A stretch of DNA of 63,875 nt, the filler included, from Octopus bimaculoides (taxonomy: Eukaryota), in NCBI RefSeq assembly GCF_001194135.2. It is 7 parts of 7 records of this genome, joined end to end, with 100 filler letters (N's around TTAATTAATTAA, not from the genome) between each part and the next. Parts side by side here need not be neighbours in the genome. Positions count along the whole stretch, not along the records: positions 1 to 5,996 come from NC_069005.1; 6 more parts are not named here. One strand, given 5' to 3'. The notes beneath the pieces are model-generated. The model ran no database searches. It was given only the letters and a program-made list of their open reading frames with translations, and was not told the origin of the DNA. Positions 3,095-5,144 of this stretch are shown piece after piece (the first letter of the stretch is position 1; every line of letters starts with the position of its first letter). Made by a program: the position numbers and the translations under genes.

Positions 3095-3340
3095 CCCGTT
3101 TTCCCGGTTTCTATGGCGCATGTGTTCCCCTCCAGCAGGACGGGACGCCAGTCCATCGCAGCGTTACTCAAGAAACAGGAAGAAAGAGTGAGAGAAAGTT
3201 GGGGCGAAAGAGCACAACAGGGGTTGCCGCCACCTCGTGGAGCTTTAGATGTTTTCGCTCAATAGACATTCACAATGCCCGGTCTGGGAATCGAAACCGC
3301 GATCCTCCGACCGCGAGTCCGCTGCCCTAACCACTGGGCC
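3095..3340 (-). mobile_element. tRNA-derived SINE (family 3)
   Basis: The reverse strand reads GGCCCAGTGGTTAGGGCAGCGGACTCGCGGTCGGAGGATCGCGGTTTCGATTCCCAGACC, a tRNA-like head with A/B boxes. It continues into non-tRNA sequence and has no intact acceptor stem. Confidence 0.7.
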
Positions 3341-3507
3341 TCCATATTTAATTTACATTCAATTATTATTTACGATTATTTAAGGCAAACACAAGTAACA
3401 CGCAAATTCTTTTCACCTTTTGGTCTATATTTAATTTCGATTTGCATATATGTTCATCAATACACTATAATCTCTTCAAAGTAGACAAAATCATTTTTTT
3501 TTTTTTT

Positions 3508-3915
3508 GGCACTATCATGCTATTAGCTGTCAGAAGTGAAAGTGCTCACTGCCTGCTAGTGAAGTATCTGTCTGTCTGCCTGTATGCCTGTTGCTGGCCT
3601 GTCGATTCTTTGGCTACTGACAGCTAATACCATGACTGGCCGGAGCGAGCTATCTGTCTGTCTGTCTGTCTCTCTATCTATCTATTACTCGAAAGTTCGC
3701 GCGTCCGCGTTAGCTAGTCGTGAGTAGAAAACACAAATTTAATATAAAAACATATTTCCTGAAATTGCAAATTATTTAAAATATAAAAATATAATTTTCA
3801 ACAGAGAGAATTTATCAAAATAGAAAACAAATGAAGTTTGAAGTTTAAAAATAATAGGATCGACCACTCACGACTAGCTAGCGCGGACGCGCGAACTTTC
3901 GAGTAATAGATAGAT

Positions 3916-3964
<49 letters not shown>

Positions 3965-4103
3965 TATAGCTCGCTCCGGCCAGTCATGGTATTAGCTGTC
4001 AGTAGCCAACTGAAATTCTTTTTCTTCACTTTCGAAATCATAAGAAAACATTGAAAAACCACTGCACTGGAAGACACTTGACAGCTAATAGCATGATAGT
4101 GCC
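3508..4103. mobile_element. Fold-back non-autonomous DNA element (Merlin-like terminus GGCAC)
   Basis: Perfect 25-bp TIR GGCACTATCATGCTATTAGCTGTCA (3508-3532 / 4079-4103). Inner inverted arms ~3611-3726 and ~3866-4008 include microsatellites. Confidence 0.7.
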
Positions 4104-4132
4104 CATTTGTCAGCAATAAAGATTGTTTCCAG

Positions 4133-4246
4133 GGTAAATTTTCAGATTAACACTCGCACGATTTACCATATTCAGAGCTGTAAATGTTTTTTAGGGATAG
4201 GGTTAGGATCGACCACTGACCGGGTCCGCGCTGCTTTAGTAGTACC
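4133..4246. mobile_element. Mosaic MITE remnant (left end family A, right end family B)
   Basis: Starts GGTAAATTTTCAGATTAACACTCGCACGATTT and ends TAGGGTTAGGATCGACCACT...CTGCTTTAGTAGTACC. No matching TSD. Confidence 0.55.
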
Positions 4247-4474
4247 GTGTTGATATATGCATAGTAATTTAAGTCCCACTTAGATATCAGAGCTACAGTC
4301 ATTATAACTTAGATATTCAAGATCGTCCATACCTTCAAATATAATGAATAGCGTTGATATGCTCACAGAAGTTCAAACGTTCAACATCGTCCATTTAGAA
4401 ATCAAAGGTGCAGTCATAATCAAAATCATTCATATCTTCAAAAGTTTGGACATATAATCTGAGTTGAGTGAACA

Positions 4475-5090
4475 TTAAAAGTCTACCAAGTCGTCCATAT
4501 GATCGTAGTCTTGTGCACATTCAATTTCCTCTGCCAAGTCAAAATAAGCGTTGGCCATATGATCGTAGTCTTGTGCACANNNNNNNNNNACATTCAATTT
4601 CCTCTGCCAAGTCAAAATAAGCGTTGGCCATATGATCGTAGTCTTGTGCACATTCAATTTCCTCTGCCAAGTCGAAACCGAACATACGATCTAAGTCGTC
4701 CATTACGGAATTATTATGACTGGAATGACGTTTCGCGTCATTTGGCCTCCCGACCGTTCCACTACGACTAGGTGAACGTCGAATTCTGATACTAGTACCA
4801 TCGTTCTTCGTTGTAAACTTCGATTTATCACTGAGCTTCACAAATTTCGTCGTGATCTTAAAGTTTGGTTTGCTACGTTGCACTTCTTTCAAAACGTAAA
4901 GCTTTCTATTGTCACAAGCGTAGTATTTTCCATATTCTTTGAAAACTGCTATTTTTGTCATATTGTCTGTCATAGTTTCACCACCGATAATAGTTGAAAT
5001 CACTTTATCTAATGTTTCTCCATTATAAAATGTGTTGCTTATAGAATCCTGAGAATAGCGGATTTCATTTAGACTTAGTTCGGTGCACAT
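4475..5090 (-). CDS. Intronless protein with ParB/sulfiredoxin-like domain and acidic 20-aa tandem-repeat tail
   Basis: MCTELSLNEIRYSQDSISNTFYNGETLDKVI...IAVFKEYGKYYACDNRKLYVLKEV...KFTTKNDGTSIRIR shows the I-x-[FY]-S-Q-x-S...DNR[RK]L pattern. The reading continues through FDLAEEIECAQDYDHMANAY repeats to DDLVDF-TAA (4475-4477). The apparent frame break is a 10-N gap at 4580-4589. Fold assignment is from recalled motif similarity. Confidence 0.7.
4496..4674 (-). repeat. 60-bp coding tandem repeat (20 aa), copy number unresolved
   Basis: The unit ACATTCAATTTCCTCTGCCAAGTCAAAATAAGCGTTGGCCATATGATCGTAGTCTTGTGC is identical on both sides of the 10-N gap. Confidence 0.9.
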
Positions 5091-5137
5091 CGTGTTCGAA
5101 TGGGTGGGCAGTTATGGAAATTAGAGAATTCAACAAA

Positions 5138-5144
5138 TTTTATA
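5138..5144 (-). promoter_or_regulatory. Candidate TATA box of the ParB-like ORF
   Basis: TATAAAA on the minus strand, ending 47 nt upstream of the ATG at 5090. Weak on its own in AT-rich DNA. Confidence 0.35.

Follow-up and report, generated by a model that had tools for sequence, protein, structure and literature searches.

A ParB/sulfiredoxin-fold head, probably derived from bacterial toxin tips, with an arginine-to-lysine variant motif in a single-exon gene of Octopus bimaculoides

This report concerns a single-exon gene on the minus strand of a 63,875-nucleotide stretch of Octopus bimaculoides DNA (RefSeq assembly GCF_001194135.2; hereafter the window, whose first 5,996 positions, from record NC_069005.1, hold the gene), annotated in RefSeq as LOC128250772. 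Our analyses suggest, with a probability of about 0.7 for the explanation as a whole, that this genuine octopus gene encodes a ParB/sulfiredoxin (Srx)-fold head derived from the tips of bacterial polymorphic toxins, that the head works by a nucleotide-binding mechanism and that the acidic tail behind it has a regulating role. The head fits the Tox-ParBL1 type, to which it was matched through the published features of the family rather than through the type protein, and homology to this family is not in doubt despite an N-R-K motif where N-R-R is usual. The family itself was predicted computationally in 2012, metazoan members included; what is new is an octopus member with an arginine-to-lysine variant.

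Fold and family of the head domain

Tox-ParBL1 was defined by Zhang, de Souza, Anantharaman, Iyer and Aravind in 2012 as a divergent ParB-like toxin domain linked to RHS, HINT and filamentous haemagglutinin (FilH) modules, with N. gonorrhoeae NGK_2271 as its type protein and a distribution that takes in Actinobacteria, Proteobacteria, Firmicutes and scattered eukaryotes, including metazoa (PMC3482391). Its signature combines an N-terminal Ser/Thr that is absent from classical ParB with a [NT][RT][RT] motif, the last two positions of which are mostly R, and sulfiredoxin was regarded by the same authors as an independent acquisition (PMC3482391). At E <= 1e-3, a profile of the octopus domain matched 3,550 cluster representatives, of which 1,229 still pass E <= 1e-10; because of the latter matches, the domain is not a chance open reading frame (ORF). 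The domain forms the extreme C-terminus of a longer protein in 71 of the best 150 profile matches. For example, Pfam places RHS_repeat, DUF6531, PT-HINT and Peptidase_S8 (subtilase) upstream of it in three proteins (P0100, P0101 and P0072), the RHS/PT-HINT proteins P0035, P0072, P0100 and P0101 are matched by the octopus-domain profile with E of about 1e-21 to 1e-25, and the matches also include one protein named filamentous haemagglutinin and one with PT-HINT. The likeness to polymorphic toxins proposed in the initial annotation thus corresponds to homology with toxin tips that carry RHS repeats, PT-HINT or filamentous haemagglutinin, at 30-40% identity between the octopus domain and the bacterial tips.

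Of the other published features of the family, the N-terminal Ser/Thr is present: within the motif IRYSQDSI, 138 of 156 family domains have S or T at position 13 and 137 have S at position 16, and the window protein has S at both. In the arginine motif, the protein reads N61-R62-K63, so that the first two positions fit and the third, a lysine, is a conservative departure; at the position equivalent to GxxR it reads D-N-R-K (family consensus D-N-R-R), with D for G and K for the last R. The phyletic pattern, bacteria plus animals, is that of the family. In sum of likeness, the octopus head shares with Tox-ParBL1 a domain of ~100 aa with an alpha+beta fold, the N-terminal Ser/Thr, a motif of the N-R-R type that here departs at its third position, the occurrence of the family domain at RHS, HINT and filamentous haemagglutinin tips, and a link to ParB that is made by profile and structure. 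Unlike the bacterial members, the octopus domain is N-terminal in a short stand-alone protein with an acidic repeat tail and N-R-K, and its gene comes without a delivery module or an immunity gene.

On the bacterial side, a genome scan with a narrow pattern built from 7 bacterial sequences identified carriers in Kribbella, Micromonospora, Streptomyces, Paenibacillus, Luteimonas, Sorangium and others, and this narrow pattern returned no Neisseria; tblastn against plasmids gave 6 unannotated matches, among them Bacillus and Sinorhizobium plasmids, which were uninformative. RHS proteins of Paenibacillus agilis (locus L007) and Streptomyces longispororuber (locus L013) end in the domain, and each is directly followed by a small acidic ORF: a 123-aa ORF of net charge -13 in the former (3325-3696) and a 110-aa DUF7660 protein of net charge -12 in the latter (3258-3590; Pfam E = 1.1e-15). 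This is the classic layout of toxin and immunity genes, and the two small ORFs are candidate immunity proteins.

A second large class of profile matches carries the domain at the N-terminus of short proteins, and its named members are animals. The poorly characterised animal family anticipated in the initial annotation therefore takes in molluscs, an annelid and tunicates, the carriers being bivalves (a dozen genera), Octopus paralogues, the annelid Dimorphilus and the tunicates Styela and Clavelina, with expansions and tandem arrays of the family in bivalves and octopus. Full-length orthologues of the window gene in O. sinensis and O. vulgaris share 71-75% identity with it. The tails of the N-terminal-type members vary: 33 are transmembrane-like, 13 end in a CaaX box (e.g. 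CCVIL) and 21 are strongly acidic, and a separate screen of C-termini found 19 proteins with an acidic, hydrophobic-rich end, most of which close with an aromatic residue (DDFW, DLYGW, DDFFL). The window gene falls in the acidic-tail group. The same head also occurs on CaaX, transmembrane-like or acidic/aromatic tails among paralogues (P0014, P0017 and P0020 in Octopus, P0004, P0016 and others). The pattern points to a single enzymatic head that is targeted to different places, or differently regulated, through varied tails.

The link to ParB is visible solely through profile-profile and structure comparison. When 122 members were searched at E <= 10, Pfam PF02195 (ParBc) was absent from the 25 most often matched of the 83 families, and there was no Pfam match at all for the window protein. 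An AlphaFold2 (AF2) model from a 122-sequence alignment reached a mean confidence (pLDDT) of 87.1 and a predicted template-modelling score (pTM) of 0.80; a model from a 4-sequence alignment (pLDDT 41) was discarded. In a Foldseek search of the PDB with this model, the first 44 places were all taken by the ParB/Srx fold, including sulfiredoxin 6ky4 (E 7e-3, probability 0.99), ParB 7bnk and 6sdk, Noc, KorB, PadC, Atu1540 and a free serine kinase; in a viral structure library, all named matches were to ParB/Sulfiredoxin, and probabilities rose to 0.99-1.00 across the structure searches. This is in agreement with hhalign, in which the family reached scores of 26.8 with human Srx (P 1.8e-4) and 20.2 with a ParB profile of 84 sequences (P 4.5e-3); treated identically, the accepted ParB-Srx pair scored 27.9, and reversed and shuffled controls scored at most 17.2. 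DNRR was placed on GCHR or GERR in both alignments. For these comparisons, reference sequences were verified against PDB 6sdk, 1vz0, 4umk, 7bnk and 1xw3, and 80 further ParB domains were collected; a 4-sequence ParB profile was uninformative (P = 0.12). As modelled, the N-terminal ~105 aa are a ParB/sulfiredoxin-fold domain, and the likeness first noticed in the sequence stands, the predicted fold matching ParB/sulfiredoxin structures only.

Within this superfamily, the octopus head differs from each of the better-known members. Sulfiredoxin (PDB 1xw3, 6ky4) is its best structural match and is also a eukaryotic single domain of similar size, with hhalign laying DNRK on GCHR and IPxIxV on PPIDV; unlike sulfiredoxin, however, the octopus protein is only 10-16% identical in sequence and has N61 opposite the catalytic Cys of GCHR, the absence of which rules out a sulfiredoxin. 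With the CTPase N-domain of ParB, Noc and KorB (PDB 6sdk, 7bnk, 7ol9, 8qa8), it shares the fold and the placement of the arginine motif, where the helix following the central strand begins, whereas it lacks Box III (ENLQRxDL) of partition ParB and has D instead of G in GxxR. A canonical partition ParB was rejected, as no helix-turn-helix, C-terminal dimerisation domain or ParA-binding motif was found in this protein of a 105-aa head and a low-complexity tail. The sole experimentally characterised toxin of the ParB fold is ToxB, the classical Tox-ParB tip of CdiA (motif GNHR), which binds and hydrolyses ATP, loses both activities in the mutant R108A and is neutralised by an immunity protein occluding its pocket (bioRxiv 10.64898/2026.05.05.722872). 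The octopus head resembles ToxB in being a ParB-fold toxin-tip domain with an arginine motif at the equivalent position; ToxB, on the other hand, is detectable with PF02195, whereas the octopus family has DNR[RK] and its own motifs IRYSQDSI and KFTTKNDG.

A competing similarity was to MADS-box proteins, which would make the product a DNA-binding protein of SRF-TF type instead of a ParB-like enzyme. Weak Pfam SRF-TF matches were obtained in 14 of 122 members over DNRRLWVFKKAEEL (best E = 6.9e-5, below the cut-off). These matches stay under the gathering threshold, cover about 30 residues and do not occur in the window protein, and the predicted structure matches ParB/Srx folds only, which makes this alternative very improbable; the SRF-TF similarity over YxLDNRRLWVFKKAEEL (domain aa 55-75) is probably a chance likeness of a short basic helix.

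The octopus locus, its R-to-K change and the proposed mechanism

The gene is a bona fide O. bimaculoides nuclear gene. The window matches record CM046625.1 of GCA_001194135.2, the locus aligns collinearly with both O. sinensis and O. vulgaris for about 1.45 kb and in further blocks downstream, its GC content of 33-40% is similar to that of the flanks, and RefSeq has protein-coding models in all three octopus species. A bacterial contaminant or a very recent horizontal insertion might be suspected from the bacterial context of the closest characterised domain, but contamination is excluded because the locus is collinear in both other Octopus assemblies and AT-rich like its flanks; in addition, its nearest relatives are animal proteins, and octopus repeats flank it on both sides. 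We consider this explanation effectively refuted, and contaminant DNA, which had been named as grounds for dismissing the gene, is not borne out.

The origins suggested for the gene fared less well. Horizontal acquisition may at best apply to the whole family, long ago, but not to the gene itself, which is syntenic across Octopus and has several paralogues, and the neighbour-joining tree was too weakly resolved to date or orient any transfer. Retrocopying has no specific support, the paralogues also being single-exon genes in tandem arrays; a candidate intron-bearing parent, O. sinensis LOC118767871, was rejected, since it is three merged single-exon copies. These three tandem paralogues lie on O. 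sinensis CM016883.1 (about 20.77 Mb; L103 3001-3408, 12201-12568 and 21412-21777), about 9 kb apart and each acidic-tailed, on the same chromosome as the window-gene orthologue and about 9.7 Mb away from it, and the annotation fuses them into one 18.8-kb gene. The description of the surroundings as transposon-only DNA was overstated: the setting is ordinary intergenic DNA, with neighbouring genes 7-10 kb away and MITE-like repeats (miniature inverted-repeat transposable elements) nearby.

The departure from DNRR noted in the initial annotation is accurate. Of 156 family domains, 151 have R at the last position of GxxR, DNRR is found in every other octopus paralogue seen, and K at position 63 is confined to the three orthologous octopus sequences and a single degenerate repeat copy. 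R63K is thus a lineage-specific change at the presumed phosphate-binding residue.

The most likely activity, judging from the modelled fold, is nucleotide binding or hydrolysis by a ParB-like pocket, tuned by the acidic tail. The head would bind a nucleoside triphosphate at D-N-R-K, the equivalent of GxxR at the start of the main helix, with IRYSQDSI and KFTTKNDG probably completing the pocket, and would then hydrolyse the nucleotide or transfer a phosphoryl group. R-to-K at the key phosphate-binding arginine probably weakens catalysis and may tip the protein towards binding or sensing nucleotides. The head (aa 1-106) has a net charge of +7 and the tail of about -23, and because the window gene is acidic-tailed and the bacterial partners are also strongly acidic, we infer a regulating or masking effect of the tail on the basic head: the tail would probably fold back on the head, or compete for it, as a regulator or docking peptide, much as the immunity proteins encoded beside bacterial toxins presumably mask the toxin domain. 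Inside the cell, the protein may serve as an effector of conflict or defence that descends from a bacterial toxin, which is the least secure step of the proposal. A bolder version, which we hold to be unlikely, would see a single-chain toxin with a built-in antidote, in which the acidic, aromatic-ended tail masks the head, the CaaX and transmembrane paralogues are parked at membranes, and a latent mollusc defence enzyme is released on infection or damage, R63K having turned a hydrolase into a nucleotide sensor.

Alternatively, the protein could be a fully active toxin or defence enzyme, for example a nuclease or NTPase, like the bacterial tips, with K equivalent to R and the tail a mere spacer. 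The identity of the domain to bacterial toxin tips, the retention of the remaining conserved residues, the positive charge kept by lysine, and the expansions and tandem arrays, which are typical of conflict genes, all agree with such an enzyme. However, the arginine is not freely exchangeable, because it is kept in nearly all family domains, all other octopus paralogues seen included, and the equivalent change R108A in ToxB abolishes ATP binding and hydrolysis; moreover, an unregulated, partnerless toxin in the cytosol would harm its own cell, and no immunity-like gene adjoins the octopus locus. Full activity of the bacterial kind is therefore distinctly unlikely.

Several results weigh against the nucleotide-binding, tail-regulated domain proposed here. 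Foldseek E-values are modest (7e-3 and weaker), with template-modelling scores (TM-scores) of 0.42-0.53 (0.42-0.50 for the PDB), hhalign probabilities are all <50%, and searches of Pfam, NCBIfam, PADLOC and PDB sequences with the protein and the family profiles at E <= 10 gave no meaningful match (matches to levansucrase and IgA protease, at E of about 0.3-1, were dismissed as noise). In the literature searched, there is no published biochemical activity of any Tox-ParBL1 domain: a search on ParBL1 returned the 2012 paper only, and searches for RHS or MafB ParB-like toxins returned nothing later on the family. The proposed role of the tail is, for its part, an analogy with the acidic proteins encoded after the bacterial toxins. 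At the level of substitutions, the ratio of non-synonymous to synonymous rates (dN/dS) between the octopus orthologues is 0.57 (12 synonymous and 27 non-synonymous differences, O. sinensis and O. vulgaris being identical here and thus in effect one comparison), so that the check on selection called for at the outset gave a value below 1 that is not significantly so (binomial P = 0.096). Identity by substitutions is 91% in the coding sequence (CDS) and 90.6% in upstream non-coding DNA, changes have occurred at family-conserved positions (P7L in O. bimaculoides, I47T and R105C in O. sinensis/vulgaris, R63K in all three), and conserved columns are not significantly poorer in variable sites (P = 0.22).

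Such a pattern would also be expected of a decaying relic, a toxin-derived copy that has lost its activity and is drifting with its frame not yet broken: coding and non-coding DNA diverge equally by substitution, the key arginine and near-invariant sites have changed, and the repeat number of the tail is unstable between species. Against this, the ORF is intact in three species. The unique part of the CDS (405 nt) has one in-frame codon indel and no frameshift, whereas upstream non-coding DNA (921 aligned nt) has 17 indel events, 9 of them frameshifting, and at the upstream indel rate the probability of no frameshift in the CDS is 0.019. None of the signature motifs IRYSQDSI, DN-R and KFTTKNDG has been lost, conservation extends to the TATA region and a block 3' of the gene, and RefSeq models the locus as protein-coding in each species. 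Constraint on the coding sequence is weak, and we regard the relic explanation as unlikely, preferring a gene that is still maintained, with a probable nucleotide-binding head and a tail that may regulate it.

Gene structure, assembly gap and acidic tail

The features of the gene are collected in Table 1. From the ATG at 5090-5088, an unbroken frame runs up to an assembly gap, and the CDS is uninterrupted in three octopus species; the initial description of an intronless gene with a ~105-aa domain, a basic Ser/Arg linker, an acidic tail and an upstream TATAAAA is confirmed. An in-frame TAA lies 24 nt 5' of the ATG with zero AG dinucleotides between the two, and the N-terminus is therefore fixed, with no extension through read-through or through splicing into this stretch. 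The gene's protein has no signal peptide and no hydrophobic segment (maximum Kyte-Doolittle 19-residue mean 0.47); it is a cytosolic protein, and a secreted venom toxin is ruled out by these same two absences.

Table 1. Positions of the gene's features in the window
Feature	Position	Strand	Basis or remark
TATAAAA, candidate core promoter	5138..5144	-	54 nt 5' of ATG; kept as GATATAAAAT in O. sinensis
Whole CDS, ATG to TAA	4475..5090	-	Broken solely by gap 4580-4589; orthologous uninterrupted ORFs
ParB/Srx-fold, Tox-ParBL1-type domain (predicted), aa 5-106	4773..5078	-	Profile search, AF2, Foldseek, hhalign
N-terminal signature IRYSQDSI, aa 10-17, contains conserved Ser/Thr	5040..5063	-	Family alignment
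DNRK, aa 60-63	4902..4913	-	Aligned to GERR (ParB) and GCHR (sulfiredoxin)
KFTTKNDG, aa 91-98, family-specific conserved motif	4797..4820	-	Absent from both ParB and Srx
Basic Ser/Arg-rich linker, aa 107-130, net charge +3	4701..4772	-	Composition
Acidic tail, pre-gap part	4590..4700	-	DDLDRMFGF, then 20-aa units DLAEEIECAQDYDHMANAYF
Assembly gap, 10 N, within 60-nt tandem repeat	4580..4589	.	Sequence
Acidic tail, post-gap part, CAQDYDHMANAYFDLAEEIECAQDYDHMDDLVDF	4478..4579	-	Then TAA at 4475-4477
Presumed 3' untranslated region (UTR), conserved 3' block with decayed repeat copies	4248..4441	-	Interspecies alignment

The tail is a tandem repeat with a period of 60 nt or 20 aa (DLAEEIECAQDYDHMANAYF), and the assembly gap falls within it. 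Two identical stretches of 63 nt flank the 10 N (4517-4579 and 4590-4652); the pre-gap frame stops on a codon boundary at 4590 (...EEIEC), the post-gap frame begins on one at 4579 (CAQDYD...DYDHMDDLVDF*), and both edges are in the same repeat phase. Taken literally, 10 N disrupt the frame. Because both edges are codon boundaries of the same repeat unit, however, the frame continues through a gap of any multiple of 3, including any count of whole 60-nt units, and the protein length would be about 180 aa with the two flanks counted as a single copy, 200 aa with the flanks directly adjoining, or 200+20n aa. An identical gap is present in the chromosome-level O. bimaculoides record. The orthologues, of 197 aa in O. 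vulgaris and with an unbroken ORF of 237 codons in O. sinensis, run through equivalent repeats to a similar end (...FFDMD[DE]LFD*), the number of repeats differing between octopus species.

By contrast, the RefSeq model XP_052832599.1 (LOC128250772, 179 aa; L022 10001-10696, i.e. window 4395-5090) bridges the gap by an intron and takes its C-terminus, ...EEIEYMNDFDYDCTFDF, from the 3' block. This intron and the borrowed C-terminus are probably an annotation artefact of the gap and the repeats. In O. sinensis, isoforms X1 and X2 differ by in-frame "introns" within the repeats, and these models are likely to be distorted by the repeats as well. The 3' block itself consists of decayed, frame-broken copies of the 60-nt acidic repeat. 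At 90-96% identity to the O. sinensis and O. vulgaris sequences, it is conserved no less than the CDS; its distance from the stop codon is about 35 nt in O. bimaculoides versus about 335 nt in O. sinensis, and it may be a 3' UTR element.

Elsewhere around the gene, a MITE-like element at 1596-1776 has 62-nt inverted arms, 92% complementary and 57 nt apart, and a copy of its terminus lies at 4132-4164, about 310 nt past the gene's stop codon. A palindromic element at 3610-4009 has 81-nt arms, 91% complementary, with (CTGT)n and (AGAG)n microsatellites. Another assembly gap, larger than the one in the tail (2312-2562, about 250 N), is intergenic and far from the gene. Rfam and tRNA scans across the window gave zero matches.

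Implications for the Tox-ParBL1 family

For annotation, the locus offers a lesson, its RefSeq model having been distorted by an assembly gap. The Tox-ParBL1 domain is widespread across bacteria and animals, as the profile matches attest, yet it has no Pfam model, and DUF7660 would gain a likely role, immunity, from the candidate in Streptomyces longispororuber. The octopus gene is a natural arginine-to-lysine variant at the presumed catalytic site. From an evolutionary point of view, animals, molluscs especially, have kept and multiplied a domain of bacterial killing tips and joined it to membrane anchors or acidic tails, and the function of this family would reveal the activity of a toxin class, the way in which animals domesticate bacterial toxin domains and, possibly, a new form of invertebrate innate immunity.

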